This document shows, piece after piece, positions 1,357 through 62,599 of a stretch of DNA of 64,000 bases. The notes beneath the pieces were generated by a model. That model saw nothing but the letters and a program-made list of their open reading frames with translations, searched no databases and was not told the origin of the DNA. The stretch lies in the NCBI GenBank assembly GCA_964247055.1, contig OZ176051.1, forward strand, positions 9,362,001 through 9,426,000, given 5' to 3'. Positions within the stretch are counted from its first letter, which is position 1; each line of letters opens with the position of its first letter. Made by a program: the position numbers and the translations under genes. Source of the stretch: Paragordius varius. Lineage: Eukaryota > Animalia > Nematomorpha.

Positions 1357-1784
1357 TATATATATACATTTTGAGTAATTACATCGGAAACTCTAAGAGC
1401 CCAAGTGGTGACTCATTAATTCTGTAAAATAATTAGAAGAAATAATTAACCGTTTAATTTTATTATAACTCTTCAGGTCAAATGAAATGAAGAACAGGAG
1501 CTTGATGGAACAAAATATTTATACACACCAAATTATTTGTTATTAATTATTATACAAACATTTTTAACTAAAAAAATTTTAAACAAAAGTAATACATAAA
1601 CACTATATTACCTTTTCACATTTTATATTATGGGTACTTATTTGGATTCTTTGTCCCTTTAAACTTATATGGTACAATTATTATTAGGGAAATTGTTTTT
1701 ACTAAATTAGTCCAAAATGTTTTTATAAATTTTTATATGTATATAGAATATAGAACCAACACTCGTGACAAACAGGTGATATTT

Positions 1785-4700
1785 AATTTAATAAATATCA
1801 TAACCTCGAATTTTTATCGAATAATTCCATGTCGGATGATATGACAAAATCAGTAAGGGCAATGTTCCATATTTTTTAAATGGATCTAAGCATTTATATA
1901 CGATTATTAAAGCTTCAAATAATGGTTGTTTTTTCATTTCATTTGTGTCGGATCAAGGTATAAAATAAGTTCTGGGTATAGAATGTGAACATTGATACAT
2001 TCAAAAATGTGAACATTCAAAATACAATGTCCATTATATCCCAAATTTAATTTTAATTGTATAAACAAATTTGATTATGCCAAAACTTGTTTAATGAGAG
2101 GGAGCTTTCCGCATGGATAACAGAATCCATGATATTTTGATCTTCGTGTAAGCTAAGATCATTTTCGGAACATGATTGCAAATCCAAATTTTGTATTGGT
2201 CTAGTTTCTATCGAATCGCATAAATTAAAAATTTTAAAATACCTGAAGGAAGTATATTTTGTAAACTTTTCTTCCAATGTCCCTTTGGATGTGGTTCATT
2301 TTGAATAAGAGGGATGTTTTTTTCGTTAACCCTTGTTACAGTCCATTTACTCAATAAAATAAAGGCTAACCATGCCACAATGATCAAAATAAAACAAATT
2401 ATAAAAATGAGTAATATAAAAGTAGTATCTATATTAAATGGATTAGATGCGACATGTTTAGAACGTAAACGTTTATTTTAAATTTATAAAATATTTTAGC
2501 CAATTATTGTTAAAATTATCACAAAATCTATTTAGCTCTTTTTAAATTTTCCCATTATTTTTATTTAGAGTATTGAGTAACGCCAAAAAATATTTTTTAC
2601 GATAAAAATTATCTTTGGGCGTACTCTAAGTTGAATCCATTTACCGAGCCATTATAATATTATTTGGTAAATATTGGAGATTTTAACAAATTTAATAAAT
2701 ATTTTTTTGTAAAATTTTTAACCGAATAAGTGTATTTTCTAAAAACACAATTGTAAGTTATTAATGGAGTATTTTGATATTGATGTCGGGAAATCGATCC
2801 TGTCAAACTTGAATAAAGATCTAAAAACTATTCAACAGTTTATTATAAGCTCCGAGATATGCACCGATCTATATTAATTTATATTACGCACCATAAAAAC
2901 ATTGGATTTTTAGATTCCACTTTATCAATAAGAGCTTGCTATTAACTCAGATAAATTTTTTCATGGTTCATAAAACTTAATTTATTTTTTTCCGCACATT
3001 CCATATTTACACTAAATTTAATTTGAAGTTAGCCAGGGTTCGTCAATTTTATTTTAATTTGTATCGAAATTGGTATAAACAGGGTTCAACACAAATAACT
3101 TCGCGGCTTCTGTGATAAATTCTGGTTATATTTTATTTATTTAGAGCCCTTTGGATTGATATATCTCATAAATAATCGTAAGTTTTGATTGAAATCAATT
3201 TTTTTAAACATTTATTAGAGCACTTTTGCATACACCCTGCTTTAAAACTTAATTGTAAATGTTTACATAATGCAGCTAAACTAGCGGAAAATGGATGGTA
3301 GGGGATCAAAAGTTGGTAATAACTTTATGAAAAATTCCCAGAGGTAGAATTATAACCAGTTCCACTGCAAAGCATATGTATTTAAACTAATTAGAGAGGG
3401 GTAGATAAATTATCACTCCAATAACAACCAAAGACATACATGTAGCAATTTTTTGTGGATAGGAAGCGGTAAACTATCAACATAGTGTAAACAATGTCAC
3501 ATGATATCTTGTCTCAAACTCGATATTGTTGTCAGAATGATGTTAATACTATAAAAACACATGTTGTAAAGAGAACGGCGAAAATAAAGAGAAAAGCTGT
3601 TAAATTTGGACGATGACACACTGGATCCTTTGAAAACCAACAAAACAGCCAACTTTGATAAAAAGGCAAAAACTGTTTGATGGGCAACAAATATTCATCA
3701 ATGAGTAGTTGCTGAAGCTTAAAAATTTAATTGCTTTTGTGATGTTACCAATTATATTCGGGTGGAAGAGTTTTGGGAATTTCTGACAACTTAACATGGT
3801 AAAACGGCAAAAATGGGGATCTAAAAATAATTTATGAATAGCTAAAAGCTTTGAGATAATGGACATCGAAATGATAAATGCGATTAATATTCTGGAAAAA
3901 AGTAATTAAATTTTGCAATTTGAGGATAGTATCGCACATTAGCTTAAATAAAATATTAAACAATAGAGGAAAATTCAACTATATTGTATTGTTTATATTA
4001 TTATAAGCCTAATCCAAAACTTAAATATAGAACGAGATGGATATTAAAATTTTGTAACCAAACAAATTGGTTCGAACCCAACGAAATATGTTTCTACGTT
4101 CGATACTATTTAAATCAATTTTCTAATCGAGCAACTTCCCAAAAAATTGGTAAATGAAATAGCCTAGTACTAATTAATGATAAAATAATTTAGGGATTTT
4201 TTTCACAAAGGCTTACAGCAGTGGTAACAAAATATAAAGGGACGAAAAAAAAATATCTTGTCGCAATGGTTAAACACCCACCATGTAATACCGATAAAAT
4301 TTCATAGCTTTTTTGACACATTTGCAGATATTTATACTTAAAATAAAAATTTAAAAATATAATAAATTTAAGGAGATTCCCTAGGGTCACGGTTGGAGTA
4401 CCTCTGCTAAAATGATTTTAATAATATTAACCTAATTTAAAAAAATCATATTTACAAAAGGGCATCGTACGGCAGAACCGTGAAAATAAAACCGATAATA
4501 CTCTCGCGTCAATAAATATTTCAACTCAAAACATAAAATAGATATAAAATTTTAGGGCAAATCTAGACAACACCTAATAATATATTCCAAAAGTTAAATA
4601 TTTTATTGACTTTGTTATGAAATTATTTTTGGAATATTAAAATTTTGAATTTATTTGATATAATCCAAAAACTTTCGTGGGCCGCAAATTGTTGCAGAAG

Positions 4701-7451
4701 ACCGCGTGTAGGACAGTGCTGGTAGATAAATGGACAATAAAAATCGAGATATTAGTGTTGGTTTGGTATGAAGCTTTAATTACTTCTTTAAATCAACGTT
4801 TTACTTATTCAAAGTTGTGGGCCCAAATAAGAATTAATTGCCTAAAATGTTTAATATTTATTTGTGAGAGATAGTTAATTTTTGTAAATCATCACACAAC
4901 GAAAAAAGTATTAGATGTTTTCTCTTATTTTTAGTTTCAATTGATTATTAACTAGAGCGATTTGATCACCGGCCGAAAGACGCAACTTACAAGAATTCGC
5001 TCTACATTCGATTGTATACGGAGGCCGATTTTTAGCATACACAGTTATTTTTGTGGAATATTGGTTTGGTAACAGGTGAGGCTTGATTTGGTCCCAGGTG
5101 CTTGCTTTATTATTCCATCTGATATCTAATATATCGATAAAGGGTAATATATTACACATTAGTAAAAAACGAATATCATTGACATAAGAGGTTTGTTTAT
5201 AAACATTTATTATGGGCAAAATTTTATGCGAATGGTTATAATACTCGTATTCATCAATGACTAAAAATCAAATAAAACTCATTTACGATTGTGTTGTATG
5301 CATGGCGATATTTGCTTTCACTAATCAGTTAACATACTGTTGTTTGTTAAATTTTAATTTTATGCCAGTAAGTATTAACTAATGCCCAAACTACATTTTC
5401 CGAAAATAAAATACATGCTGAGAATTATAAACTATCTATATAATTTTTAGGTAAATAATAAATAATTCACAATATAATAAAACTTTGTGTGACATATCGC
5501 GTATATATTCCCTATAGTGAACATCAAGTAAAAATACATTTTCGTTTATTTTTATTTGTAAATTATTTTTTTAATATTAAAGGGTTGGTATCATGTTAAG
5601 TTGCATTATATCATTAATTTCTTTTAATTTTTTTAAAAAATAAGTACTTTTGGAGGCAGTTTGGCACTCCTTAGCTACCAATTTAATTTCATGTAGAGAA
5701 TCCGATTTTTTTAGATATATTTTGTCGTATTTGGATATTTCGTTTCTCGAACCACTTAGTATCAACTTATTATTGTCCATGTAGGTTTTAAATTTAGTCA
5801 GGTATTCATAAGAAGGGCCAAGAATCTCAACATCTTTTATATTCCATCCAAGTGTTGAGAAACTAACTGTATTTTCACACTGATAGTATTTCCGAACACT
5901 TTTCGCTAATATATATTATATTAAATTAAGCCTAATTATTCTATAATAACGTGAGGTTTTTAGATTTTTAATAATTTTAGTAAAAAAATTTATATAACTC
6001 AGATTTTAATATACGTTAATAAAGTTTTGTGAGAGCACTAATACCCAATATGAATTAACTTGACAAAAAGTTTGCAGCTCATGTTTTTTAATCTTTACGA
6101 TTAATAGGTATGTACCGGAATATTTGTATTTATTTTGCATTGGAAAAGATTATAAATGATATATAATTGTAATAAAAAATTAATAATTAAACTTACTTAA
6201 ACTTTTGGGCATATATTTAAAGTTTCCAGCTTTGTCCCACGTTCCTGGATAAATAATACATAGTTTTAAGTTATTTTAGTTTATAACAAAAAGGAGAATT
6301 GCTTAAAGAATATTGAGAGCATTAACACACTCGCCTTCGAGCATTCAGAGTGATGATGGAAAAATTATACATTTAATTATAAATATATATGAAATGTAAA
6401 AAAAAATAAAGAAAACCATCAAATTTAATTATCCATCTTCTATATGCATATTGATTCACGAAAAGGACTAAAAATTCATTAGGAATCGCTGTTATATTAG
6501 CTTGAATAGAGCCGTTGGATTTTTGATAAATTCTACCATGACTATAAAGGTTTAATTCACAAGTTTTGGCTAAATTAGGGTCATTGAACAAATCAGAACA
6601 ATTTTCCTCAAATATAAATCGTCCATTGTAGCTCTTGTAATCCGTCAAAGGGTAGAAAATTTCAAAATAAAGGTTAAGTTCTTTACCATCTATGTTAATG
6701 GTCCAAAGTCCAGCATAATCACATTTACCAGGTATATTAAAGATTAATTTTGTTTTGTTTGACACTTGAAAAGGCATTTCTTTTCCATATTTGGTAGTTA
6801 TTTGAATGGTAGGGGGTGTTTTTGAATTTTTAAGAGGTTGCCAAAACTCAGCTATATCGATTTCATACTTTTTGATCTTATTTGGTGATACTATGCCCCC
6901 TGTAATTACTAACAATTGAAAAATTACTTTGCAAAATATATATGGAAAATATATATAAAATATCTATTGATATTTAAATTGGGCAAAAACCGTAACATAG
7001 TGTGTAAGGATAACACATATATTGTTTGTTATTCCATGATATTTAGCGAAAGGCGGTTATTACAAAATATATGCATCTTTCACCTATGAATCATACGTAA
7101 AAAATTAACACTTGCACAATGTAAGAGTATTATAATATTAAATTTATTACCTTTAAGCGAAATATTTCCATGCCTTATTGTCACACCATTTTTCAAAACG
7201 GAATAAGGGCCATCAACTAAATTCACTTTAGGCGCTATCTCTTGATCAAGAAATTGTGAATAATTAACATTAGGGTAGTAAAATGTTCCAAACGCAAAAT
7301 TGACAGTTATGTTAGCTCGACCTTGATACTCATCAAGAAGTTGATAATAATATTCTAGACCAAATGAAACCAAGATGTCATCGGGATTTGGTTGCTCCTG
7401 AGCTAATATATTGTAGAACCCAAATAGGAATAAAATTGGTAGTATAATCAT
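1785..7451 (-). pseudogene. Copy 1 of a putative single-pass receptor gene; ectodomain exons open, cytoplasmic exon frameshifted
   Basis: GT-AG exons 7451-7151, 6899-6417, 6244-6197, 5905-5648 and 5260-4991 splice in phase 1 into one open frame starting MIILPILFLFGFYNILAQEQ (signal-peptide-like). The TM exon is 2428-2243, followed by a 35-nt intron. The next exon has a 1-nt deletion relative to copy 2 (GGAAAGC vs GGAAAAGC, ~2107), giving a stop at 2053. Exons between 4990 and 2430 are unresolved. Confidence 0.7.
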
Positions 7452-9394
7452 TTCAAAAAAATTATAGCTTTGATATTATAATTCTTGGAGGTCTTATATA
7501 GAAATGCTTTAAAATAAAAATGGGCCCTACATATTAAAGGAGATAAAGCAAATATTATTGAAATTTGGTGTATAATGATATTGCAGGCTACTAAATAAAT
7601 ATTTTTTTATTTTCTTTGGACCAAAAGCCTAATTTTTATGTATATCGACAAAAACATTATGTAAAACTCGTGTCTAATACATTAGTTTTGTAAAATGTCA
7701 ATATTTGCAATAAACCAAAACAACTTTACCGACAGTTATTACGGTAAAAAAATAAATTAAAGTGTATTTGATCTGGCTAAGCTTACAATCTCAAATCTGG
7801 TTTAAACACGATCGCCAATTTTAAATTATATAACTCAAAATTTGTATTATAGTTAATTTATTATATATAAAAAAGGAATTAACTGTATAATTTTATGTGA
7901 TTTGAAGAGCATGAAACGGAATCTTATAGAAGGTTCACGACAAAATAATTAATATTGCGAAAAGAAAATATAGAATTACACTGGTAGATTTTCATTAAAT
8001 AATGCCAACAACTATATCTTTATTTTTATTAAATACCAATAAAATGCCAAAAATTTACCTATATGTCGTATTAATTAATAGCTTTTAACAAATATTTTAA
8101 ATAACCTACTTAAAAAAGTTTTTGAGCTAACCCACAATTTAGTTATAATTTGGAATGTTTTCAACTTTAAGCGATTATAATTTAAGAAATTAGGAACTTA
8201 TATATATAATTCGGCATATTACCTGATGATCAACATGAGCATATATATATCAATAAAATCCCATTTTAAGTCTAAATAGAATTATACTATTTAGTCCAAT
8301 TCAATACTTTTCTAACTAAACGCATATTTTATCAAGTAAAGGCATCATCCTAACTTCCAAACGCAACATTATTTGTAGTTAAAAATTTTATTTTAGACCT
8401 GAAATTCAGCTAACCATATTAAATCTAAAAGAATTCGTAATATAATTTGTTATAAAATAAAAAATTGTCTTTAAATGCAAAAATAATGTTGCGAAATGAA
8501 AAATTTGTCTTGCTTGAAAAATTTTATGGATAAAAATTGTGGCGGGAGCTATGTTGTGTTATGACATTGTTAATTTTTACCTAATAGTTAACCTGGTAAT
8601 TATTTAATTTTGATGATAATGATTACATATTCTTTTTTCTTAAATGTAAACTATAGAATGTGATTTTTTAAAATACTAGCGTAAATCTCGTGCTGCTACG
8701 CGGGCTATTTGAAAAAAGGGACAATATGATCCACATATGTGGATTATTTCGAAACATTATATAATAGCTATGATCTCATAGGAATTTTAAAACAGCATTC
8801 ATACTAATATATTGTTTACTTGGGCGAAAAAAAAATGATTTTTGTGGACTTAATTTTAAAAAAAATGGCATTTTACGGGGGGAGCGGGTAAGAAGTTGGC
8901 CTAAATTAAAAAAGCGAGCCGACTATGTTCGGCGCAATCGAAAATAATTAAATAAAAATCATATTTGAAAGAGAATGATCCAACACGTTCTCCGGAAAAT
9001 TGTCTCAAAGACACAATTTTTGTGGACTTCTCTTTTCAAAAAAACCGTTTTTTAGACGGGGTGGGCCCGAACTGGGGGTCTAATTTAAAAAAAGGGCCAA
9101 GCTATTGTCGGTATGATTATATTTTCGTCTGGAAAAAGATCACAAAGCCAGCATTTTCCATTTTTATAAATATATATAGATTTCGATATTGTGCCAAAAA
9201 TAAACATATCTTTCTTTTATGGGATATTCATCAAAAATAAAATTGAATCGTCATTTTTAATGGCAAACGATATATTATATCATCCTTTTATTTTCTCTAA
9301 AATGTTCTCTTACGTTATACCAAAATTGAGGGCCAAATAACTTAATGACAATAAAAACATTAACACATTTTTCATTCTATAATATTGATGATAT

Positions 9395-10870
9395 TGGATA
9401 TCTCTTAGTTTATGTACAAACTCTGGGGCAGTTGAGACGATTCGACCATATTGTAAGATATCTGCGCAAGTTCTTGGATTAAATGTGGTGTTATATTTTT
9501 CTAATCTAAATATCGTAGCTTAAGCCTTCCAAGTTTCCTAGCCCCTTCAACTGGGCCTAAGATGGTCGCTTTTTCTAAGTTATCGGTTCTCATCACATGT
9601 CCGTAAACTCTGTGCTGAAAGGCATGAATTTTTTGATGAAGGTTAGTTTGGGTTTAATATGTACTAATATTTTGTATTGTATCTTTTGCTCCCATTCTAT
9701 ACCAATATATCTATAGGTCCATAACTCAAACGCTTTTATTTTCTTGCAAATGACTTACAGCTTTAATGCATTATTGGAAAACTTATTGATCTATTACACG
9801 CTTTTTGATGGAATTGGGAATTTTTTTGGAGAATGGATTAAAGTATGATTATTGCATTTTCTGCCATTGCAGCTCTCCTGGTACTGCTGGTTGTAGAGGT
9901 TCCATTTATTAAATAGTAGATCTGAGGTAAATTAAGTAGTTCTGAATGTTTTGTTCTTAAAATTCACAGTAAGTCCTCTTTTGTTGGGATAAGAATTGTT
10001 GCGTCATCTGCGAAACGCAGGTTATTGATTGTCTCGCCTTCTATTATGATGCCTGCTGAGTCATTTCTATTATTTTTGTGATGTCAGTAAGTTAAATAGC
10101 GAAGGTGATAGTGTACATCCTTGTCTGACCCTTATTTGTCTATTTATTGTTTGGTTGGGGCTTGCTGAAACTCGTATAAATGCTTTTTCATTTGAAGATT
10201 GTTGAGATTTAATAATGTGCAGGGAAAATCCGCTTCACCCATAGTTTTTAATAGACCACCTTATCAAAGCCTCGGAGTAGTTCAGGAAGGAAAATATTTT
10301 TGTTGTATACATTTGCTTGTTCTATTATGCGTTTTATATTAGAGATGTGGTCTCGACAACTTTGAGTCGGAAACCAGCCTGTTTATTAGATATGGAGTTT
10401 CTGTACCAATTCTCTATGCTCATTTGGATTATTTGAAAAGTATTATGTGTTTGTGAGGTGTGATAATTCTGCAATAATCGCAATCTTTTCCTTGACATTT
10501 TCATGTATATTGGTATAAAGATTGATTTAGTCCAGTCTTTTAGCCATCCACAATTTCTTTTGGCCTAACTTGGTTATTATGTCAGTTGGTTTTAGGACTT
10601 CTTTCGAAATGCGTCCATCCTGGGGTTATGTTCTTAACGATTAGCAATCCTGTATTCAATTCTTGTTTGAGTTATGCTGGGTTCTGTTAAATGTGGAATA
10701 ATTTGTGCGGTATTTGTTTTAAAAATTTGCAATGTATTCCTTGTTACATCTTGTTGTTGGTTAGGTGATTCCTTCAATGTGATTTATTTGTGAATTCTAT
10801 GGGTTTATAAGGTATTCATATAGGGAGATGCTTCTTTAGACAATTCGTTTCAAATTTGTGGCAAGTATTT
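9395..10870 (-). mobile_element. Degenerate RTE-clade non-LTR retrotransposon (reverse transcriptase region)
   Basis: Minus-strand translation gives DWTKSIFIPI, QAGFR, VRQGCTLSPSLFNL and INNLRFADD, interrupted by stops and frameshifts. Confidence 0.88.
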
Positions 10871-11330
10871 AATGCCTGTATTTTTGATGTCACATAGCAT
10901 ATATTATTGGTACCATGCAATCTCGCCATTTTTGCGTTTATTCAAAAAGATAGCCTATTTTAAAGGGGTTAAAATTTTATATAAATAATAATATTTCATA
11001 TTTAAAAATTTATATAAGATTTTTTTGTAATGAACATCTAGTTTTTAACCAAAAAATATATTTAGCATAAAGTGGGCCTATTTTGCCATTTTTCGATCAA
11101 AAGTATAATTATTTAAAAAGATGTGCCCAAAACCTAAAGGATTATTAAAGTCCTGATTATATCAGATTATATATTTCATCAGGATGTTTTTAGACCGCCC
11201 GATTCACTCTGTGCATATAAAATAAATATACTGTAAGCATGGAATAATTAATATAAAATATAATGTCTTTCAATATTTATTTATTTTAAAGAACCATTTA
11301 TATCAACTTAAAGTATTTTTAGAGATCTGA

Positions 11331-14300
11331 TTATCTGAAAAGTAGTATCGTTTTCTTCAGGTTCTGTTTCATAATTGTTGTTATTGTTTTTGAATCAAGA
11401 ATAGTTGATCCCATAACCATTTTAGTATAGCGACCGGTTGACATAGCTAATATGTATATTGAGCACATTTCAAGTGTCTGCGTATCCAAAAAGTTCATCG
11501 GGATAGTCAGGTTTTCATTGTAATTTGAGTATAGGTAACATTTTCGTTTTGACTTTAACAATCTTTCGATGATCTTGAAGAGATATAAGCCAAAATTTAA
11601 TGTACATTTGTTTACCCGACCATTCGTCGTTAAAATCAAATTATAATCATGCACTTTCAACATCGAAGAACCTTCGGGCGTTGCGTTAGAGCTCATGCCT
11701 TAAAAAATGTAATTAAATTAATATTTTTGACATAAAATGATAAAATAGATCGTTAACATTATACTTATTGTCAATTCTCCTGCAACAGTGCTTTTGGTTT
11801 CGTCTAACAGGGATTCTAATTTCAGTAAATAGTCACAATATCCGACATTTGATAGTTCTTTTTCTACCGATCTCAAATATAGCATACCTTGACCAACACA
11901 CCGTATTTTTTCAAGATGGGGCATACTTATATCTATTGGCGAGTCGTTTAATTGTTGGATAAATAATTGAAAAATCAAAACATCTGCAGTCAATGATATT
12001 GAACTTATATCTATGTATATCAATAGCACATATATATATATATATATATATAGATATGTTAAGAAATTACATCGAAAACTTTAAGAACCCAAGTGGTGTC
12101 TGATTAATATAGTGAAATAATCAAAAGAAATAATTATCGGTCTCAATTTTATAATTAATCTCGCAGGTTCTTTGAAATGAAGGACAGGAGCTTTGGATCA
12201 AAATATTTGCACACAGACCAAAATTATCAGTTATGTTTATATACTACAAAATTTTTGGCACAAAAAAAATTTTAAACATAATGTAACACATAAACACTAT
12301 ATTACCTTTTCATATTTCTTTGTCCCTGCGCTTTAAACTTATATAGTACAATTATTATTAGGGAAATTATTTTCGCTAAATTAGACCAAAATGTTTTTCT
12401 AAATTTATATATGTTTAGAATATAGAACCAACACTCGTGACAAACAGCTGATATTAATTTAATAAATTTCTTAACCTGGAATTTTTATCGAACAATTCCA
12501 TGTCGGATGATATGACAAAATCAGTAAGGGCAATGTTCCATATTTTTTTAATGGATCCAAGCATTTATATACGATTATTAAAGCTTCAAATGACGGTTTT
12601 TTCATATCATTTGTGTCTGGATCAAAATATAAAACAAGTTCTGGATATAGGATATGGACATTGATACATTCAACAATGTGAACATTCAAACTACATTCCT
12701 GTCCATCATATCCCAGATATAATTTTAATTGTGTAAATAATTTTGATTTTGCCAAAACTTGTTTAATAAGAGGGAGCTTTTCCGCAAGTAAAGCAGAATC
12801 CATGATATTTTGATCTTCGTGTAAGCTAAGTTGATTTTCGGAACATGATTGTAAATCCAAATTTTGTATTGGTCTAGTTTCTATCAAATCGCATAAATTC
12901 TAAAATACCTGGAGTAGTGAATTTTGTAAATTTTTCTTCCAATGTCTCTTTAGATTTGATTTCATTTTGAATAAGAGGGGTGATTTTTTCGTTAACCCTT
13001 GTTACAGTCCATTTACTCAATAAAATAAAGGCTAACCATGCCACAATGACTAAAATAAAAGAAATTATAAAAATGAGAAGTATAAAAGTAGTATCTATAT
13101 TAAATGGATAAGTTGAAACATGTTTAGAACGTAAACGTTTATTTTAAATTTTTTAAATATTTCAACCTATTATTGTTAAAATTATCACAAAAGCTATTAC
13201 TTCTTTTAAAATTTTCCCATTAATGCTTTTTAGAGTTAAGTAATGCCAAAAATATATTTTGCACGATAAAAATTCCTTTGCGCTTAATCTAAGTTGAGAA
13301 ACTCTTCTTTTACCAAGCCATTCTAATATTCTTTAAAATTGGAGGTTTTAAAAAATTTTATAAATATTTTTTTGTAAAGTTTTGAACCGAATAAGTGTAT
13401 AAAACGCAATAGTAATTTATGGATTATTTTGATATTGAGGTCGTGTTATCAGTCCTATCAAACTTTGAATAAAGATCTAAAATCTATTCCACATTGATTT
13501 ATATAAATTTATATTTAATAAGAATACCACACCTTCAGGATTAAAACACCACAAGGTTCAGAGCCCTTTTCAATAAAGCATGTCTACCAAGGCTCATCAC
13601 TCAGCCCTTTATTGTTTTAATAATTTGTATAAACGAGGTAGCCAAGGTCGTTAATGTAAGGTCAGGTTGGCACTTAATGTTATGCAGATGACATAATCAT
13701 TTCTGATTCATTGGCTGAGTTAAAGCGAACGGTAAACAGATGGGTTATTATATAGAATCAATATCGTCTGAAAGTAAACAAAGCAAAACCTGAATTTATT
13801 ACTTTTGGGGGTCCACAACATGAAATGGAAGTTGATGATAATTGGGGTCTGAAAGGTAAAGAAAGGTGCAAATATTTGGGGGCAATGTTAAGTTCATATG
13901 GATCGTTGACCGATGATAATAATTTAAGTAAAGTGCAGTTGGGTAAATTGGAAGAAAATTTCAAACGTGTTATGTGATCGAAATATTGATGTTAGAGTAG
14001 GTATACAGTTCAGTTGTTCAAGCCACAATGATGTATAATTCAAAGACCTGGGGGGTTGAAAAATCCGAAGAAAGACATTTTGACGTCACTAAAATGAAAA
14101 TGCTTAGAATGATGTGTGTGGTAACGAGAAAGGACAGAATTAGGATTAAATTTATTCGTGAGAGCACAGATGTTAAACCAATAGTGGAAAAATGTCAAAA
14201 AATAGGCTACGTTGGTTTGGGCGCATTGAAAGGGGAGATTTTAATTATATTGCAAAAATAAAAGATAGTCATATAGTTGTAGGAAAACAAGGATGTGCGC

Positions 14301-17300
14301 GGCCTAAAACAAAATAGATAGACACAAAGAGAGCTAGCAGAATACGAGCAGTTCTATGGCGAGACCGGATACATGACCGTCACGAGTAAAAACATGTAAT
14401 GTAATTATTAAATATATATTTACTCACCGTAGAAACATTGTATATATCGACCAGTCGCGGAACTATAAATTTTGCCCCCCCCCCTCACTCCAAAAAATCG
14501 TTTGCAGTTATCTTTTCACATGGCGCATCATTTAGATTCGTAAAGAAATATTATATTTAAAAATGATAATATTTACATGACTTGGCATCCTGAGTCTAAA
14601 TTGCGCTCCCGGGATTTTTATATATAATAGTTAATACCCACCCGCCCTCCCTAACCACCGTCAATACCTTAATATTAATGTTCATTTTGAAGGTTTAAAA
14701 TAATTAAATATATATTAAAATGTATTAATTGGAAAACATGTTATAACATTTCGTTTTCCGTGAGCAAATTTTCTAATTTATCTTTTTATCCATTTGATCC
14801 ACCATCCATGTTCTTTTTAAATGCCCAGATTTAATGTTTTTTGTAATAGGTTTTTGAAAAGCAAAGATTTTCTGAATAAGGATTTCTTTTATATGACCTG
14901 GGGGACGATGTAAATTACACGATATCAGAATTTTCTTTATTACTCTATATTTATATAATACCCATATCGGAATTCTTTGAAATCAAACAAGTTAAACCAC
15001 GTTCCACATTAGTATGACTCAAACTATGCATATCATCTATACTTTTTTTGCTAATCGCTATCGTTTTCTCATTTGTGCTGGAGCTATCAGGAGGGCTAGG
15101 TTCAATAGTATGACTCGAGTTATCCAAATTATCTACACCATTACTGATATCAACTGTTTTTTGTTTCTCGTGTGAGCTAGCATCAAAGAATACATTTGTC
15201 AAAACGGGTTTTAAGAAATCTGTCATTATTTTAATTTTTGATGCTTATTTTTCCTTCGCTCATATTCGTTTTTACTCTTCACCCTAGTTTGGCACTAAGA
15301 TACAAAAAAACATTAAGAATTAAATATTTTGTAAGAAATTTTTTTACAACTGGCGATTATTGTGAAAACATGATGCGAATCCTTAAAATCTTTTAGTTCA
15401 GGGGTCGGCAACCTTTTCTTTTGTGCGGCGCCCAAGTAAATACCATAATAAACCATGATGCTGTAGCTAATATGGGATAATTATATCCTATTTTACTATG
15501 AAGACTTATATCCTAATTCATGTGGACAGCTTGTTTAGTGAAGCTGTCTCTATTTCGCTCGTCTGTAGGCTCACATATTCGTTTTTCATATAAACACATT
15601 GTCAACATATGCGCCAATACGGGCCTACCTAGGAATAGCAGCGGGAAAAGTTTTTAAATACAAACTAATTGCTAAAAGTTTTTCCTTCGGAATTCGGATA
15701 AATAAATTTTGACAGCTGTTTAGTCAGAATAATAAAATATTTTTTATGGTAATAAGGCTTTTTGATATTATAATAAAAATGCTACGAACCTGTCCCAAAA
15801 AAGTGGAACTAGAATCGGGCTCCAATCTAATAACGGAGCATGAATCGGTTCCTAAAAGAAACCAGGTTCCGATTCGAAGGCTTAATAAATATTTCTAAAT
15901 GTAATTGCATGGAATATGAATTTATATTTGAGAATGGCCCGCTAAAAAAATTGATCTCTGTTTTATTGTGTGGTGAAAGTTTATCGAAAATTTTATATTT
16001 TATAACAAAAGATAATTTAAAATAACATGCATCAAAGGATAAAAACATTATACAAATGATGCATATCAATGTATACCTGCTATTAAAAGTTGGCCAATTC
16101 ACTTCACAGTAAAGTATGTGAAATAACAATCTATAAAATTTAATGAATATCATTCACAATGTATGCATTGAAACATTTTTAAAATTATTGTTATTTCTCA
16201 TATGAATTGGTACACATTAATGTGAGTTGGCCTGCATTAAAATGCATATTGCATAATCAAAATAAATTAGATTATTAGAGAACATTGTTATAATGAATGT
16301 TTATCTTTTTCCCCTCCTTTATTTATTCACTATTAGATTGCCAGAAATTAATAATGGATCATCACTAAAATTTAATGGATAGTAAAAAATGCATTTTTTG
16401 CTCTTTCTTCCTTTGACTCAATAATATTAAAATTTACATGAACCCATTTCCTCACAAAAATTAAATATGTAAATTATCTTTCACTACATCAAAAAACGAA
16501 ATATATTTTTACGCTATATGAATATAATATTTTAAATGAGATTTTATTTGTAATTATTTTAATTTAACAGAGGCAAATTACATCTGTCAAAATTATGTGA
16601 ATTCTCATGAAACTATAATTTTTAATAACAAAATTAGGACTTGAAAATACATGAGATTCACTTGGTGTCAATCTATACTCATTTATTTATATTTAAACTA
16701 TTTTCATTTTTTAAAGTGTTAACTGAAGATAATTTAAAGTTTTTTATTAATTATAAATTTATAATTAAACCGCTTATTGAGATAGTAAAAAAATGCTCTT
16801 TTTCACCTTTTCTTCCTTTCAATAAATAATAATTCTCTTTATTCTTTGCCAGTATACTTACAAACAGGCAATTACTTACATATCTGTACATGAAAAAAAG
16901 TATTAAATTTTAAGCACCCCCCTCGCAACATAGAACGAGGGCCCAAATTTAATATAAATAAAAAGGGCCCCTGTTTTGCCTTGGGCCACCCCGCACTGCT
17001 CCCCCTAGCCCGTCGTTTCGCCACTGATTCCACTTTACCGCTATCAAGATCTTGCTATTAACTCACATACTTCCTTTGTGTAGTTAAATTATTTATTTGG
17101 TTTATAAAATTTTATTTATTTTTATCCGCACATTTATTTACTATATTTAATTTAAAGTTAGCCAGGGGTTGTCAATTTTATTTTAATGTGTATCAAAATT
17201 GCTATAAACAAAGTTCAAACACAAATATCTTCGCGGCTTCTTTGATAATATTTGGTTAAGTTTTTATTAGACCAATTTTGGATTGATAGACCTTCTATGT

Positions 17301-20300
17301 TATCGTAAATTTTTGATTGAAATCCAATTATTTATTTTTTTTAACATTTATTAGAGCTCTTTTGCACACACCCTGCTTTAAAACTTAATTGTAAATGTTT
17401 ACATAATGCAGCTAAACTAGCGGGATAAATGGTAGGGAATCAAAAGTTGGTAATAACTTTATGAAAAATTCCCAGAGGTCGAATCATAACGAGTTCCACT
17501 GTAAAGTATATGTATTTAAACTAGTTAGAAAGAGGGGCAATCGGCACTCCAATAACAACCAAAGACATACATGTAGCAAATTTAGTGGATAGGAAGCGGT
17601 AAACTATCAACTTAGTGTAAATAATGTCACATGATATCTTGTCTCAAACTCAATAGTGTTGTCAGAATGTTGTTAATACTATAAAAACACATGTTGTAAA
17701 GAGAACGACAAAAATAAAGAGAAAAGCAGTTAAATTTAGACGATGACACACTGGATCCTTTTAAAACCAACTAAACAACCCACTTTGATAAAAAGACAAA
17801 AACTGTTTGATGGGCAACAAATTTCCATCAATGAGTAGGTGCTGAAGCTTAAAAATATAATTGCTTTTGCGATGTTACCAATTATATTCGGGTGGGAAAG
17901 TTTTGGGAATTTCTAACATATTTAAACATAATATGGTAAAACGGCAAAAATGGGGATCTAAAAATAATTTATGAATAGCTAAAAGCTTTGAGATAATGGA
18001 CATCGAAATGATAAATGCGATTAAAATTCTGAAAAAAAGTATTAAATTTTCAATTTGCGAATAGCATTTTTATCGCACATTAGCTTAAATAAAATAATAA
18101 ACAATAGAGGAAAATTCAACTATATATTATTGTTTATATTATTATAAGCCTAATCCAAAACTTGAATATAGAACGAGATGGGTATTAAAATTATTGTAAC
18201 CGAACAAATTGGTTCGAACCCAACGAAATATGTTTCTACGTTCGATACTATTTAAATAAATTTTCTAATCGAGCAACTTCCCAAACAATTGGTAAATGAA
18301 ATAGCCTAGTACTAATTAATGATAAAATAAATTAGGGATTTTTTTCACAAAGGCTTACAGCAGTGGTAACAAAATATAAAGGGACGAAAAAAAATATCTT
18401 GTCGCAATGGTTAAGCACACACCATGTAATACCGATAAATTTCATAGCTTTTTTGACACATTTGCAGATATTTATACTTAAAATAAACATTTAAAAATAT
18501 AATAAATTTAAGGAGATTCCCTAGGGTCACGGTTGGAGTACCTCTGCTAAAATGATTTTAATAATCCTAACCTAATTAAAAAAATCATATTTACAAAAGG
18601 GCATCGTACGGCAGAACCGTGAAAATAAAACCGATAATACTCTCGCGTCAATAAATATTTCAGCTCAAAACATAAAATAGATATAAAATTTTAGGGCAAA
18701 TCTAAACAACACCTAAAAATATATTCTAAAAGTTAAATATTTTATTGACTTTGTTATTAAATTATTTTTGGAATATTAAAATTATGAATTTATTTGATAA
18801 ATCCAAAAACTTTCGCGGGCCGCAAATTTTTGCTGGAGACCGCGTGTATTAGAGTGCTGGAAGATAAATGGACAATAAAAATCGAAATACTAGTGTTGGT
18901 TTGGTATGAGGCTTTAATTACCTCTTTAAATCAACGTTTTACTTATTCAAAGTTGTGGTCCCAAATAAGAATTAATTGCCTAAAATGTTTATTATTTATT
19001 TGTTAATTTTTGTAAATCATCACAAAACGAGATAAGTATTAGATGTTTTCTCTTATCATTAGTTTCAATTGATTATTAACTAGAGCGATTTGATCACCGG
19101 CCGAAAGACGCAACTTACAAGAATTCGCTCTACATTCGATTGTATACGGAGACCGATTTTTAGCATACACAGTTATTTTTGTGGAATATTGGTTTGGTAA
19201 GAGGTGAGGCTTGATTTGGTCCCAGGTGCTTGCTTTATTATTCCATCTGATATCTAATATATCGGTAAAGGGTGATATATTCGACATTAGTAAAAAACGC
19301 ATATCATTGACATAAGAGGTTTGTTTATAAACATATAGTATGGGCAAAATTTTATTCGAATGGTTATAATACTCGTATTCATCAATGACTAAAAATCAAA
19401 AACTCATTTACGATTGTGTGAGTGTATGCATGGCGATATTTGTTTTCACTAATCAGTTAACATACTGTTGTTTGTTAAATTTTAATTTTACGCCAGTAAG
19501 TATTAACTAATGCCCAAACTACATTTTCCGAAAATAAAATACATGCTGAGAATTATAAATAATCTATATAATTTTTTATCTAAATAATAAATAATTTAAC
19601 AATATAATAAAACTTTGTGTGACATATCGCGTATATTTATTCCCTATAGTGAACATCAAGTAAAAATACAATTTCGTTTATTTTTATTTGCAAATTATTT
19701 TTTTTAATATTAAAGGGTTGGAATCATGTTAAATTGCATTATATCATTAATTTCTTTAAATATTTTAAAAAAATAAGTACTTTTGGAAGCAGTTTGGCAC
19801 TCTTGAGCTACCAATTTGATTTCATGTAGAGAATCCGATTTTTTTAGATATATTTTGTCGTATTTGGATATTTCTTTGCTCGAACCACTTAGTATCAACT
19901 TATTATTGTCCATGTAAGTTTTAAATTTAGTCAGGTATTCATAAGAAGGGCCAAGAATCTCAACATCTTTTATATTCCATCCAAGTGTTGAGAAACTAAC
20001 TGTATTTTCACACTGATAGTATTTCCGAACACTTTTCGCTAAACATATTATATTAAATTAAGCCTAATTATTCTATAATAACGTGAGGTTTGCAGATTTT
20101 TAATAATTTTAGTAAAAAAATTTATATAACTCAGATTTTAATATACGTTAATAGAGTTTTCTTAGAGCACTAATACACAATATGGAATTAACTTAACAAA
20201 AAGTTTGCAGCTCATATTTTTTAATCTTAACGATTAAGAATGTACCGGAATATTTAATTTGCAATGGAAAAGATGTTAAATATGAATAATATATAATTGT

Positions 20301-21575
20301 AATGAAAAATTAATAATTAAACTTACTTAAACTTTTGGGCATATATTTAAAGTTTCCAGCTTTGTCCCACGTTCCTGGATAAATAATACATAGTTTTAAG
20401 TTATTTTTCTAGTTTATAACAAAAAGGAGAATTGCTTAAAGAATTTTGAGAGCATTAACACACTCGCCTACGAGCATTCAGAGTGATGATGGAAAAATTA
20501 TACATTTAATTATAAATATATATGAAATGTAAAAATAAATAATAAAAACCATCAAATTTAATTATCCATCTTCTATATGTATATTGATTCACGAAAAGGA
20601 CTAAAAATTCATTATGAATCGCTGTTATATTAGCTTGAATAGAGCCGTTGGATATTTGATAAATTCTACCAGGACTATAAAGGTATAATTCACAAGTTTT
20701 GGCTAAATTTGGGTCATTGAACAAATCAGAACAATTTTCCTCAAATATAAATCGTCCATTGTAGCTCTTATAATCCGTCAAAGGGTAGAAAATTTCAAAA
20801 TAAAGGTTAAGTTCTTTACCATCTATGTTAATGGTCCAAAGTCCAGCATAATCACATTTACCAGGTATATTAATTATTAATTTTGTTTTGTTTGACACTT
20901 GAAAAGGCATTTCTTTTCCATATTTGGTAGTTATTTGAATGGTAGGGGGTGTTTTTGAATTTTTAAGAGGTTGCCAAAACTCAGCTATATCGATTTCATA
21001 CTTTTTGATCTTATTTGGTGATACTATGCCCCCTGTAATTACTAAAAATTGAAAAATTACTTTGCAAAATATATATGGAAAATATATATAAAATATCTAT
21101 TGATATTTAAATTGGGCAAAAAACGTAACATAGTGTGTAAGGATAACACATTGTTTATTATGATATTTAGCGAAAGGCGGTTATTACAAAATATATGCAT
21201 CTTTCGCCTATGAATCATACGTAAAAAATTAACACTTGCACAATGTAAGAGTATTATAATATTAAATTTATTACCTTGAAGAGAAATATTTCCATGCCTT
21301 ATTGTCACACCATTTTTCAAAACGGAATAAGGGCCATCAACTAAATTCAATTTAGGCGCTATCTCTTGATCAAGAAATTGTGAATAATTAACATTAGGGT
21401 AGTAAAATGTTCCAAACGCAAAATTGACAGTTATGTTAGCTCGACCTTGATACTCATCAAGAAGTTGATAATAATATTCTTGACCAAATGAAACCAAAAT
21501 GTCATCGGGATTCGGTTGCTCCTGAGCTAATATATTGTAGAACCCAAATAGGAATAAAATTGGTAGTAAAATCAT
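11331..21575 (-). CDS. Copy 2 (most complete) of the putative receptor gene: signal peptide, modular ectodomain, TM helix, cytoplasmic kinase-like region
   Basis: Exons 21575-21275, 21032-20550, 20374-20327, 20038-19781 and 19388-19119 are open and phase 1. TM exon 13094-12909 encodes TTFILLIFIISFILVIVAWLAFILLSKW. A 28-nt intron leads to exon 12880-12476, another 28-nt intron to an open exon from 12447, then ~11990-11765, a 66-nt intron and 11698-~11340. The middle exons (19118-13095) are unresolved, so intactness is not proven. Confidence 0.62.
12031..12052. repeat. (TA)11 microsatellite; empty site of the foldback insertion
   Basis: Read directly. Its flanks match, in reverse complement, the two flanks of the 61345-62535 element. 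Confidence 0.9.
13530..14400 (+). mobile_element. RTE-clade LINE 3' fragment in an intron of receptor copy 2
   Basis: Plus-strand motifs QGSSLSPLLF, YADDII, CKYLG and TWGVEKSEERHFDVTKMKMLRMMCVVTRKDRIR. Absent from the homologous intron of copy 1 (~2830-2915). Confidence 0.85.
14452..17026 (-). mobile_element. Composite, internally deleted hAT element (ZMYM1-like transposase remnants)
   Basis: Ends are cagtcgcggaac (14452) and gtttcgccactg (17026). Minus ORF 14951-15226 continues as GHLKRTWMV, then joins a C-terminal IRKFAHGKR remnant. A Charlie-type end, caggggtcggcaacc, lies at ~15398. No matching TSD. Confidence 0.6.
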
Positions 21576-23039
21576 TTCAAAAAAACTATAGCTTTGATAT
21601 AATTCTTGGAGGTCTTATATAGAAATACTTTAAAATAAAATGGGCCCTACATATTAAAGGAGATAAAGCAAATATTATTGAAATTTGGCAATGTATAATG
21701 ATATTGCAGGCTACTAAATAAATATTTTTTAATTTTCTTTGGACCAAAAGCCTAATTTTTATGTATTTCGACAAAAACATTATGTAAAACTCGTGTCTAA
21801 TACATTAGTTTTGTAAAATGTCAATATTTGCAATAAACCAAAACAACTTGCCCGACAGTTATTACGGTAAACAATAAATTAAAGTGTATTTGATCTGGCT
21901 AAGCTTACAATCTCAAATCTGGTTTAAACACGATCGCCAATTTTAAATTATATAAAACTTAAAGTTTGTATTATAGTTAATTTATTATATATAAAAAAGG
22001 AATTAACTGTATAATTTAAGTGATTTGAAGAACATGAAACGCAATCTTATAGAAGGTTCACGACAAAATAATTAATTTTCGAAAAGAAAATATAGAGATA
22101 CACTGGTAGTTTTTCATTAAATAATGCCAACAACTATATCTTTATTTTTTAAACAATAAAATGCCAAAAATTTACCTATATGTCGTATTAATTATTAGCT
22201 TTTAACAAATATTTTAAATAACCTACTTAAAAAAGTTTTTGAGCCAACCCACAATTTAGTTACAATTTGGAATGTTTTGAACTTCATTATTATATACTAT
22301 CTTTATGATCTAACTTAACATAACAATTACCACATCACTGTTGGTATTATAGATTATATTTATTCAGAAAAAATATATTGAATTGTACATTGACATCATT
22401 TTATTTTACAATTAATAAAGTACTAGGCAGTAAATGTTAGGGGTTTTCAGTGATTGTTGGGACAGCGGAGATTGTTTATTGGATATAACATTACATAAAC
22501 ATATAGATTTATTTCGATTTAGATCGTGTTTGACCAGAATTGTTTTGTAAGTTTAGCCACGAAAAATAATATTTATTTAGTATTTCCGTTTGTTACAGTT
22601 CAAACAAGTTGTTTTCGTTTAAGGGAAAAATTGGAATTTTTTTACCAAACTTAGGCCCTAGATATTTTTGTCAACATAGATATATAGAAATTTTAAGCTT
22701 TGGTCCATTATTTAATAATATTTATTTAGTTCCTTCATATAATGAGTTGCCAAATTTAATAATTATTTATCTCAACTGTTAATTTTTGAATGCTCTAACC
22801 TTACCACTTATTCCTACTATATAATTGAATTATGCAAAATTTTAAGATATATAGACATAATTCCAAGTAAGAAAGATTAACTAAAAGGTTCAGTAGCTAA
22901 GATAACTGTCAATTTTGCTTATGGAAATTTACTTAGATAAAATTAAATACAATTTTTTAAAAGTAATTAACCAAATAATACCTGTAGTAATTACTATCAA
23001 AAGCAAATTATATAATTTGATTGCTATGCATATCTAGGG

Positions 23040-23479: not shown

Positions 23480-24530
23480 ACAATTAAATATTTTTTTCAA
23501 ATCATAATATGTTGCCTTGATATATCCAATAATTAAACATATATTTTCCACAATGCCCAATAACTTTTTAGTGTTTCTAACAATCAAACATATTTCAACA
23601 ATGAAATAATTTTTCCAACAATCAAATTATGTGGCCCAATAATATTTTAGTTTTTCCTACAATCAACATATATTTATACAAAAAAATAATTTCTCCAACA
23701 ATTTAAATATGTTGCTCAGCAATACCTAAGAGTTTTAACAATCAAAGATAGATTTTTAATAACTAAATAATTTTTCCAATAATCAAAAGAAATTGCCCAA
23801 TAATATTTTAGCATAACATTCAAAGCTATATTTTCAGCAATCAATATATGATGCCCAATAATAATTAGTGTGTCCGACAATCAAACCTTTATTTTCAACA
23901 ATCAAATAATTTTTTTAACAATCAAAATATGTTACCCAATAACTTTCTATTGTTTCCAACACTCAAACATATATTTTCAACAATGAAATAACTTTTTTAA
24001 TAATGAAAAGATGTTGTCAATAATATTTTAGTTTAAACAACAATCAAACATATATTTTTAATAATCAAATTGCCATTGCGTTGCTGAACCGGATCGATCA
24101 AGAAAACCGTTTTTTGTTACCGTGAGGCCTTTAGATTTTTCCAATAATCAAAAGATTTTGCCCAATAATATTTTATTATTTCCAACAATAAAACATATAT
24201 TGGAAACAATAATAATTTTTCCAACAATCTAAATTTGTTGCCCAGTAATTTGGTTATAACAACAATCAAACATATATTTCTAACAATCAAATAATTATTC
24301 CAACAATCAAAATATGTTGCCCAAAAATTATAATATTTCCAACAATCAAACATATATATTCAAAAAGGAAATAATTTTTCCAACTATCACAATTATTTAT
24401 AACATTTAAACTTATATTTTTAACAATCAAATAATTTTTCCAACAATCAAAATATATTGCCCAATAATTTTAGTGTTTCCAACAAGCATATAATTACAAA
24501 TATCAAATTATTTTCAAACAATGAAAAAAA
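23480..24530. repeat. Degenerate tandem satellite: ~80-bp units built from four ~20-bp CAACAATCAAA subunits
   Basis: gcccaat-like anchors recur near 23633, 23713, 23795, 23933 and 24013; the aacaatcaaa core recurs about every 20 nt. Confidence 0.85.
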
Positions 24531-24535: not shown

Positions 24536-26574
24536 TGATGGTGTGTGGAGTTTATTACAAAGAAAATATTTATTCATTACCAAAATTAAACTTATGTGTG
24601 TAATATCACAATACTTCAATTATAGACTAACTATTTTGCTTGAAGGCACAATTAACAATATTAACTCCGTGTATCACAAAGTGTTATAATTGTTTGCAAT
24701 TATATAGGTGTTTTGTCCACAACAGTAGGTTCTACTTTAACATCACTCTTTCCCTGTAACTGATATCTATCTGGATGGTGTCGGATTCGTGTAGGGTCTC
24801 GCCGTTGTGTGTGAGTGTCAGTGGTAGGTGTTATGGTGGGTGTTTGGGATGGCAATTCAATGACGGGCTCCAAGGGTTGGGGCGGTATGTTCGGAGCTGT
24901 GGTCGTGCCAGTAGGGTATCTGACACATAGGTCAAGCGATTGTGGTGTTTATTTAGACAAAATTGTCTTTCCCATTCTTTCCCATCCTTCCCTTGTTCTC
25001 AATTGATCGGCGTGTTTTCGGATGATTTTGTTAACATCTCGTATTTTATATGGGAGTAATCCGAATACAATTTTTCGTTTTCATGGTATTCGTGATTAGG
25101 TTGCACATCCTCTACGAAGTCTTATTTTAGCCATGTGATTGGATTTTAGGAAAAGTTGTGCGGGACAGGTATTTGTAGCACTGTGAATGTTAGTGCGGTA
25201 TCCAAGCGTATTATTTATTTTTGATTGTCGGTAGTCTTCTGCCGACCGGTAATGTGTTTTTAGAGTATATATCACTAGTTCCACCATTCCGCTCGTTTTT
25301 GGATGATACGGAACTGATGTTACATGTTTAATGTTTGTCGTCATGAATTTCTTAAACTGCCCAGATGTAAAGTAAGACGCATTGTCAATTACTATCAATC
25401 CTGGAAATCCATATAGACTGAAACATTCGTATAGGAAATATAAGATATTTTTGTTCGATATCATTTTCGATAGTTTAACTTCGACCATCCAATAAAATTG
25501 TCTATTGGGCCTGCTATATCTAGATTTAATCTCTCCAATATTGCTGTATTGAAGTTCCAATTGTATGTGGGATTCAGTTTTGGCATCGACCCACTTTTTT
25601 AAGTCGCTTTCCATGTTGTGCTAAACGATTATTTGCTTTGGACCCCAGGTGTCCGACGTGTAAGTGTAAGATATTTATCTGCCAATATAACCCATACGTA
25701 TTTGCAATTTGATTTTGTTCTTGGTGCACTTATTACCTGGACTGGTCGGTGGTCTGGCTTCTAATATGGTTACGATTTAAGTTAAGATTATTGACAAACC
25801 TTACATGTTCTGTTGTTTGAAGACTTTCTGTGTCTTGTTGTTGAGGTTCTGTCGGCATGCGGGACAATGGATTTGCAATGTTTTCGTGACTTTTAATGTA
25901 CCGTAGATTGTAATCAAATTCGGAAGCTTTATACATCCAACGTAGTAGCTTGGAATGTTTATTTGGTCTAGTTTACGATTATTTCCAAACAGCTTTATTA
26001 GTGGTTTGTGATCAGTAGGAAATTCAAACTTCTTCCCCGTAATAAGCGTTTTAAATTTTTCAAAGCTAAAAGTATGGCTTGTGCTTCCTTTTCTATCACT
26101 GAATAATTTTCTTCGGGATTAGACCACTTTCTTGATGCGTATACAATGGGTTTATTTATGCCCTCCTGAGTGGTCTGCAGCAACACTGCTCCGTACCCTT
26201 TATTCGGGGCACCTGTTTCAATTATTATAGGAAACTCAGGATTGAACGGGGTTACTTTAAAAGTATGGCCTATTAAATTTTTGGCTCTGTTAAAACAGTC
26301 CTCGAGGTCTTTGGTCCATATCCAGGGTCATAACTGCCTAGGTCGTGAATTACAGAAAAACTTCCACATTTCGGAAGGCATTGTGTGTGAAAACTTACTA
26401 AGCCTAAAAAAGACTTGAGTGTTTTTTGTCATAAACTTGGGAAGTCTTGCATGGCTCTAACTTTATCTGCTGCTGGTGCGATGCCGTTGTTTGATTTAAC
26501 ATATCCTAAATAGCTTATGACCGGTTGAAAAAGTTTAAGTTTGCTTTTACTTAATTTTAAACCAGATTCTAGAC
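24536..26574 (-). mobile_element. Ty3/Gypsy LTR retrotransposon relic: RT end, RNase H, integrase, PPT, 3' LTR
   Basis: Motifs ISYLG, KPIVYASRKWSNPEENYSVIEKEAQAI, GFPGLIVIDNASYF and SVPYHPKTSGMVE. The polypurine tract agggaaagagtga is followed by a TG...CA LTR (~24742-24536) containing AATAAA. Confidence 0.9.
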
Positions 26575-44000: not shown

Positions 44001-44720
44001 TTAATTTTGTTTTGTTTGACACCTGAAAGGGCACTTTTTTTCCATATTTGGTAGTTATTTGAATGGTAGGGGGTGTTTTTGAATTTTTAAGAGGTTGCCA
44101 AAACTCATGTATATCGAATTCACACTTTTTGATCTTATTTGGTGATACATCTATGCCTCCTGTAGTTACTATAAATCGAGAAATTACATTACAAAATATT
44201 AGACATAGAAAAAAAATATAAAATATCTATTGATATTGATAAATTGGGCAAAAAACGTAACATAGTGTGTAAGGATAACACATATATTGTTATATTGTTA
44301 TTCAATGATATTTAGCGAAAAGCGGTTATTACAAAATATATGCATCATTCACCTATGAATCATACGTAAAAAATTAACACTTGCACATTGTAAGAGTATT
44401 ATAATATTAAATTTATTACCTTCAAGAGAAATATTTCCATGCTTTATTGTTACACCATTTTTCAAAACGGAATAAGGGCCATCAACTAAATTCAATTTAG
44501 GCGCTATCTCTTGATCAAGAAATTGGGAATAATTAACATTAGGGTAGGAAAATGTTCCAAACGCAAAATTGACAGTTATGTTAGCTCGACCTTGATACTC
44601 ATCAAGAAGTTGATAATAATATTCTTGACCAAATGAAACCCAAATATCATTAGGACTTGGTTGCTCCTGAGCTAATGTACTGTAGAACCCAAATAGGAAG
44701 AAAATTGGTAGTAAAATCAT
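41061..44720 (-). pseudogene. Copy 3 of the receptor gene: 5' exons only, disabled and truncated
   Basis: Exon 1 (44720-44420) and exon 2 are open. The exon-5 acceptor AG is changed to AA (~42509) and TAT is changed to TAA (~42485). Homology to copies 1 and 2 ends at 41061. Confidence 0.78.
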
Positions 44721-50093: not shown

Positions 50094-50098
50094 GTTCC

Positions 50099-56700: not shown

Positions 56701-56834
56701 TAAAAAAATAGGATTAATTCTATGAAAAGAGATATATGTGCTCTGTGCCAATGCAAATGGAATCTTTAATTGATATAACAACCATTCATCGTAAGTAAAA
56801 TAAAGCTAACTAAAATTCAACAATATACGTTATA

Positions 56835-62535: not shown

Positions 62536-62599
<64 letters not shown>
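62536..62599. repeat. (TA)n microsatellite, ~32 units
   Basis: Read directly. Confidence 0.97.

Follow-up and report, generated by a model that had tools for sequence, protein, structure and literature searches.

Secreted immunoglobulin-like orphan proteins and a passenger transmembrane module probably share one segmental duplication in Paragordius varius

The DNA analysed here (the window) is a stretch of 64,000 nucleotides (nt) of the nematomorph Paragordius varius (contig OZ176051.1, here C2, positions 9362001-9426000; the assembly holds 110 Mb in 44 contigs with ~28% GC), and coordinates are window positions unless a contig or locus is named. The window carries copies of a repeated block, of which copy B (repeat unit 10881-22284, ~11.4 kb) was followed in detail. 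We found that this block is probably made up of two separate things sharing one ~11-kb segmental duplication, namely a four-exon gene for a secreted protein and, downstream of it, a passenger module that encodes a transmembrane (TM) helix and a tail. The four-exon gene likely belongs to a species-restricted family of ~33 secreted, glycosylated proteins built of immunoglobulin (Ig)-like modules, and these proteins would not be receptors. The original prediction had described a lineage-specific family of type I receptors expanding in tandem, with the ~11-kb block as the gene span. Lineage restriction, the lack of sequence relatives and growth by tandem and segmental duplication were all borne out, and the repeat unit is indeed present, but the receptor type and the assignment of the TM and cytoplasmic exons to the family gene were not, and the block corresponds to a gene plus a passenger module. 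What results is a clean gene model, open to checking, for ~33 secreted orphan proteins with an Ig fold, whose genes had no annotation. The four-exon gene of copy B has the following parts:

21575-19039, minus strand: the complete four-exon gene, 418 codons, with all introns in phase 1 and all junctions of the GT-AG type
21275-21575, minus strand: exon 1, with the ATG at 21575, a signal-like peptide and a conserved N-terminal segment; donor G|GTAATA, phase 1; 34 genomic matches
20550-21032, minus strand: exon 2, predicted to encode two Ig-like beta-sandwich domains; AG acceptor and donor G|GTTTTT, phase 1 at both ends; 37 genomic matches
19781-20038, minus strand: exon 3, a module with conserved Cys9 and Cys80, phase 1 at both ends; 33 genomic matches
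19039-19253, minus strand: exon 4, the terminal coding exon, with acceptor AG at 19255-19254 and stop TAA at 19041-19039; 34 genomic matches
18995-19000, minus strand: a likely poly(A) signal AATAAA, 38 nt past the stop of exon 4

The alignment of the four-exon gene covered copy B and 22 paralogous loci (23 loci), and in each frame it showed a conserved core surrounded by tails of random length, with GT and AG at the edges of the core. The minus-strand open frames noted originally (21614-21060, 21096-20509, 20057-19713 and 19395-19042) were all present, as were the GT-AG junction 21275>21032, the donor at 19781 and likewise the junction 20550>20038. The acceptor at 19388 that had been proposed for exon 4 did not hold, as it is not conserved and in distant paralogs stops precede the conserved AG (19255-19254). 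Because this AG is the conserved acceptor, exon 4 starts at 19253 and the reading frame comprises 418 codons and not the ~450 given earlier. The described hydrophobic, signal-like N-terminus (MILLPILFLFGFYNILAQ) was recovered, and by a heuristic reading exon 1 starts with a methionine and a hydrophobic stretch of ~16 residues ending in AQ that is conserved across the 18-member main subfamily; the N-termini of four divergent members are hydrophobic but less regular. The product of copy B holds eight N-x-S/T sequons, in agreement with the reported abundance of such sites, seven cysteines and no internal hydrophobic stretch or TM segment.

Several lines of evidence indicate that the protein ends in exon 4. 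The position of the exon-4 stop is the same within two residues in 23/23 loci (as TAA, TAG or TGA), whereas the open-frame tails past exons 1-3 vary randomly in length. An AATAAA was found within 120 nt past the stop in 20 of the 23 loci, while among background windows the share was 26% (binomial P about 1e-9; close paralogs do not count as independent, whereas nine or more groups do). When all same-strand open frames of the 23 loci were compared with each other, only exons 1-4 were common to all, and downstream of exon 4 nothing was shared between paralog groups. The TM segment that had been taken as a property of the whole family was not found in any of the 17 paralogs outside the local cluster, where no TM-like open reading frame (ORF) downstream of exon 4 rose above background (two weak ones in ~110 kb). 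The C-terminus is hydrophilic, and therefore no tail of the glycosylphosphatidylinositol type is expected. The conserved stop with its AATAAA, the hydrophilic C-terminus and the lack of a TM exon behind the out-of-cluster paralogs together predict that the family product is secreted. A second TM-like open frame (CHRLNLTAFLFIFVVLFTTCVFIVLTTF) lies at 17700-17790 on the minus strand, ~1.3 kb downstream of exon 4, and recurs at the corresponding position of copies A, L027 and L028; it probably arose by chance.

In a genome search each of exons 1-4 matched 33-37 colinear places on contigs C2, C3, C5, C7, C8, C10 and C11. The further paralogs that a translated search had been expected to bring up thus number ~33 loci on seven contigs, ~10 of them within C2:9.36-9.53 Mb.

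The fold of exon 2 was predicted with high confidence. An AlphaFold2 model of exon 2 with 16 paralogs was all-beta and of high quality (predicted local distance difference test, pLDDT, 92.1; predicted template modelling score, pTM, 0.82), and consists of two tandem beta-sandwiches of ~75 residues. Foldseek related this model to tandem Ig domains (of filamin, titin, IL-18R, VCAM-1, CD2 and NCAM) at E about 1e-4. In VIA alignments (root mean square deviation 2-2.5 A over about 70 residues) residues 1-80 matched I-set Ig domains and residues 76-157 the Ig-like domains of plexin, Izumo1 and LAIR1, with Z of 6-7, where a Z below 8 stands for a common fold only. A shape search of the ESM Atlas returned cadherin-like, PKD and Big_2 proteins. 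At the level of sequence the family stands alone, in line with the original statement that no homolog of the ectodomain was recognised: none was found in Pfam, in the PDB or among 1.84 billion representative proteins. Ten ORF pieces (family and tail exons) gave nothing in Pfam at E up to 1, including ig, I-set, V-set and Ig_3, exon 2 drew a blank against the PDB by sequence and in the ESM Atlas by features, and a word-index protein search with exon 2, whose length window left out full-length proteins, gave no match. The exon-2 profile (16 paralogs) retrieved from the 1.84 billion proteins three borderline matches only (E 2e-6 to 4e-4), all giant proteins with TIG, cadherin or unassigned repeats and at least one of them bacterial with a type IX secretion signal; kinship with these proteins was rejected in favour of a generic Ig-like similarity. 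The modelled exon thus presents the family as an orphan by sequence with a common Ig-like fold, and its role would most likely be extracellular binding or recognition.

The tandem sandwich fold of the exon-2 model is shared with the Ig-like (I-set/E-set) domains of titin, NCAM, Dpr/DIP, filamin and VCAM-1, and, like extracellular Ig proteins in general, the four-exon protein has a signal peptide, sequons and modular phase-1 exons. It differs from the Ig superfamily in the lack of a sequence-profile match and in its cysteines, as domain 1 of exon 2 has no conserved pair and domain 2 has C97 and C110, 13 residues apart. In exon 3, which is known from sequence alone, Cys9 and Cys80 are invariant or nearly so and lie 71 residues apart, to be compared with 55-75 residues for the canonical Ig pair.

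The second component of the block, the TM-plus-tail module, spans 13094-11331 in copy B and consists of four phase-1 exons with two micro-introns and a tail of ~340 residues:

12909-13094, minus strand: TM-helix exon, preceded by AG and ending at GT, without in-frame ATG, phase 1 at both ends, with basic residues past the helix
12881-12908, minus strand: micro-intron of 28 nt (35 nt in A/L026, 32 nt in L027/L028), GT-AG, restoring the frame into the next ORF
12476-12880, minus strand: tail exon C1, 135 codons, donor CAG|GTTAAG
11732-11983, minus strand: tail exon C2, acceptor CTGCAG|AT, phase 1, with boundaries deduced from frame and GT-AG only
11699-11731, minus strand: micro-intron of 33 nt, GT-AG, joining C2 to C3 in frame
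11331-11698, minus strand: tail exon C3, stop at 11333-11331, with an AATAAA about 50 nt downstream

The observations on which the original prediction based its receptor were found to be correct in themselves. The exon with a clean TM helix exists, and such helices occur in 7 of the 1869 open frames of the window; among frames of at least 80 residues the TM ORFs of copies A and B were alone in having a comparable helix (scored in uncharged 21-residue windows). The junction 12909>12880 is a 28-nt GT-AG intron that restores the frame, and C1, C2 and C3 follow the helix on the same strand as open exons. The TM and tail ORFs are long same-strand frames in DNA of 28% GC, which GT-AG introns of 28 and 33 nt link without loss of frame. 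The exons of A- and B-type copies share 88-93% identity, compared with 80-81% for the flanking non-coding DNA, and indels are in frame in the TM exon (-1/+1, +3) and out of frame in its micro-intron (+7, +4); the C2-C3 micro-intron has gained 4 nt in L033. Exon identity above that of the flanks, together with indels in exons that keep the frame, points to a module that is, or recently was, coding sequence.

No function could be assigned to the tail from comparisons with databases. The tail exons had no Pfam match at E up to 1, C1 and C3 had no match in the PDB and C3 had no feature match in the ESM Atlas, and an AlphaFold2 model of C1 from a single sequence was uninformative (pLDDT 34). A kinase or pseudokinase tail was considered and rejected, as there was no Pkinase or PK_Tyr_Ser-Thr match at E up to 1 and the HxD and DFG-like strings come from a part of C3 whose frame is shifted. 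C3 of B and of L029 has lost 4 and 8 nt, which shifts ~45 still open codons (11520-11655, minus strand) relative to L031, L026, L033 and the inverted copy. Copy B resembles the single-pass receptor kinases and pseudokinases in having a TM helix followed by a tail of ~340 residues on the same strand as an ectodomain-like gene; it differs from them in that the tail lacks a kinase profile match and is absent from the family outside the cluster. For annotation the lesson is that this duplicated block does not amount to one gene: what suggested a receptor or a pseudokinase belongs to the passenger module and, in copy B, to a part of it whose frame is shifted. Gene finders will probably overlook these genes or join them wrongly, because the genome combines micro-introns of 28-33 bases with introns that range from a few hundred bases into the thousands.

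The module is, in addition, confined to one region and is decaying there in most copies. The TM and tail ORFs match only C2:9.36-9.54 Mb (a cluster of 180 kb), the TM ORF at seven places. Two of the copies in the window are:

2197-2477, minus strand: TM ORF of copy A, with a compensated -1/+1 frameshift and, downstream, tail ORFs with stops and frameshifts
60670-63695, plus strand: inverted and decayed tail module with six stops and many frameshifts

Stops and frameshifts were found in the tail modules of A, L026 and the inverted copy, L027 and L028 have the acceptor AG changed to TG and have lost everything past the micro-intron, and no TM module was found downstream of copy C. The best-preserved module, that of L031, keeps the ancestral frame throughout and has no exons 1-4 upstream. 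Moreover, the non-coding DNA of A and B is 92-93% identical in the ectodomain half of the unit, compared with 80-81% in the tail half, which shows that these halves differ in their history. We thus regard the module with reasonable confidence as a passenger gene piece that is broken in most copies, does not define the family and is not a kinase.

Among the other explanations the one that survives best is that, in the youngest clade only, alternative splicing from a GTAAGT in exon 4 (after 19119) or from exon 3 to 13094 yields, besides the secreted protein, a type I form with the ~340-residue tail. The element concerned is:

19113-19118, minus strand: GTAAGT within exon 4, phase 1, originating from a 3-nt deletion and present only in the youngest-clade copies examined (A, B and L026-L028)

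A number of points speak against our separation of the block into a secreted-protein gene and a passenger module. The ectodomain gene and the TM module both lie inside one repeat unit. Since the TM exon lacks an in-frame ATG and begins in phase 1, it needs a phase-1 exon upstream; exons 1-3 end in phase 1, the exon 4 of the youngest clade carries the in-phase GTAAGT, and the stretch from 19039 to 13143 yielded no other candidate for a 5' exon. Three tail copies are intact, although their proteins are 97-100% identical and their intactness therefore says little. Furthermore, the splice sites, the poly(A) site and secretion were all deduced from the sequence, the evidence for the fold covers exon 2 alone, the database searches used single exons, and the proposed binding role derives from fold and secretion signals.

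An isoform of this kind would also agree with the exon ends at 21275, 20550, 19781 and 19119 and the TM exon, C1, C2 and C3 being all in frame and in phase 1, with the basic residues past the helix, which fit an N-out topology, and with the GTAAGT occurring, among the exon 4s examined, only where a TM exon lies downstream. Yet agreement in phase has by itself a one-in-three chance, and the co-occurrence of donor and TM exon amounts to one phylogenetic event. A donor at 19119, as originally proposed, does exist (GTAAGT, phase 1), but its use would remove 26 codons that are conserved family-wide, and the hexamer occurs at chance frequency: 15 were counted in 27.7 kb of family coding exons against about 9 expected, with about seven independent cases elsewhere. 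We consequently discarded the exon-4 GTAAGT as significant evidence. In addition, the modules behind intact ectodomain genes are decaying, and the best-kept one has no ectodomain gene upstream. We therefore consider a membrane isoform in the youngest clade unlikely, and slightly more so the full scenario in which a 3-nt deletion made the in-phase GTAAGT, by which the gene can splice to a captured TM-plus-tail module, a receptor isoform born from a secreted protein. If true, a membrane receptor isoform would here be seen shortly after its origin. A comparable layout is known from the IgM heavy chain, where an internal donor in the last constant exon is spliced to membrane exons to give the membrane form. 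The layout of copy B would permit such a switch, as its terminal exon carries both a stop with AATAAA and, internally, the in-phase GTAAGT, and a TM exon lies downstream, but the internal donor is at chance frequency and the likeness is an analogy only.

The module could also derive from a neighbouring chitin-synthase-like gene, as its 3' end or as a duplicated piece of that end, in which case the copies in the array would be dead 3' fragments. Chitin-synthase-like exons flank the cluster on both sides in the same orientation and were recognised by reading motifs (QKRRW, WGTRE, PYGGRL...KRWSQV and DGD):

L032:1306-7608 = C2:9542306-9548608, minus strand: exons on the far flank, which end where the B-type homology begins
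L033:912-2036 = C2:9352912-9354036, minus strand: exons on the near flank

On the far flank the gene (7608-1306 of L032, minus strand) lies on the same strand as, and directly upstream of, the best-preserved module copy (L032 to L031), and its exons show the QRRRW-like motif QKRRW, WGTRE and late TM pairs; DNA homologous to copy B begins at position 1013 of L032, and the TM exon follows about 5 kb further. Nevertheless, no junction between gene and module was found, the exons singly lack a Pfam match so that their identity relies on motifs and a weak PF03142 match, and searches of the tblastn type found no similar tail at other chitin-synthase loci. A chitin-synthase origin of the module is in our view also unlikely.

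The four-exon family itself is under constraint. The ratio of non-synonymous to synonymous substitution rates (dN/dS, Nei-Gojobori method, NG86) was 0.15-0.48 across family pairs and ~0.3 for deep pairs, compared with 0.6-0.8 inside the local cluster and 0.34 for the pair A-B. These ratios suggest that selection is overall purifying across the family and relaxed or diversifying in the youngest cluster. The idea that copy B and much of the cluster are young, non-functional duplicates whose frames are open merely through recency finds some agreement in the high ratios within the cluster and in the stops or frameshifts of at least three of the ~10 local copies (C2:9507009, 9525035 and 9429106), but it is improbable given that in copies A, B, C, L026 and L028 none of the four exons has lost its open frame or its splice sites, that the A-B ratio is low and that constraint is clear for the family as a whole. 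The two other intact genes in the window are:

4914-7451, minus strand: four-exon gene of copy A (exon 1 7152-7451, exon 2 6418-6888, exon 3 5649-5903, exon 4 4914-5123)
42158-44720, minus strand: four-exon gene of copy C, with no TM exon downstream

A tree of exon 2 separated two deep subfamilies and placed physical neighbours as sisters (for instance a trio on C7, a pair on C5, A with L026 and B with L028), and copy C grouped weakly with a locus 3.5 Mb away. This pattern of neighbours as sisters argues for birth-and-death evolution through tandem and dispersed duplication.

Taken as a working model, a signal peptide would send the ~418-residue, N-glycosylated product into the secretory pathway. 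The body of the protein would be a string of small beta-sandwich modules, two Ig-like domains being supplied by exon 2 alone; all introns are in phase 1, and the exons can therefore behave as interchangeable modules. Exon 4 would hold the end of translation, and the transcript would probably terminate at an AATAAA 20-80 nt past the stop. The family may gain and lose loci through tandem and dispersed duplication, while the TM-plus-tail module, once constrained, would now be hitch-hiking in the duplication of the cluster, mostly broken. Members of such a fast-turnover secreted family are reasonable candidates for surface, cuticle or host-interaction proteins.

Between the module and the gene, copy B holds a further segment that sets the two types of unit apart:

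13504-17081: segment found in B-type units only (B, L029/L030 and L031/L032), absent from A-type units

Within this segment, 13519-14420 belongs to a dispersed repeat of ~0.9 kb with at least 344 candidate copies genome-wide (83-86% identity), which on the plus strand holds an ORF resembling the C-terminal part of the reverse transcriptase of a long interspersed nuclear element (14028-14261). During the search of 13144-18335 for a 5' exon of the module we also came across an island at 15900-16400 where B and L031 are 96-100% identical within surroundings of 87-95%. It overlaps an ORF of 108 residues that starts with ATG (16153-15830, minus strand), has no Pfam match and shows four differences, all non-synonymous, and it has a 79% match at 59530-60590.

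Elsewhere in the window, Rfam returned nothing, and decayed pieces of long terminal repeat (LTR) retrotransposons lie between the gene copies at 25096-25614 (minus strand), 36668-37003 (plus strand) and 37434-37784 (plus strand), which match rve/DDE_3, Retrotrans_gag and RVT_1 of Pfam weakly and below threshold. A second duplicated block, in which 22637-30997 matches 48202-56834, holds the LTR piece at 25096-25614. Each copy of this second block also contains one diverged direct-repeat array (23553-24527 and 49116-50048), with eight in-register copies of a 103-nt reference that are 60-76% identical and spaced by 21-224 nt (several by about 80).

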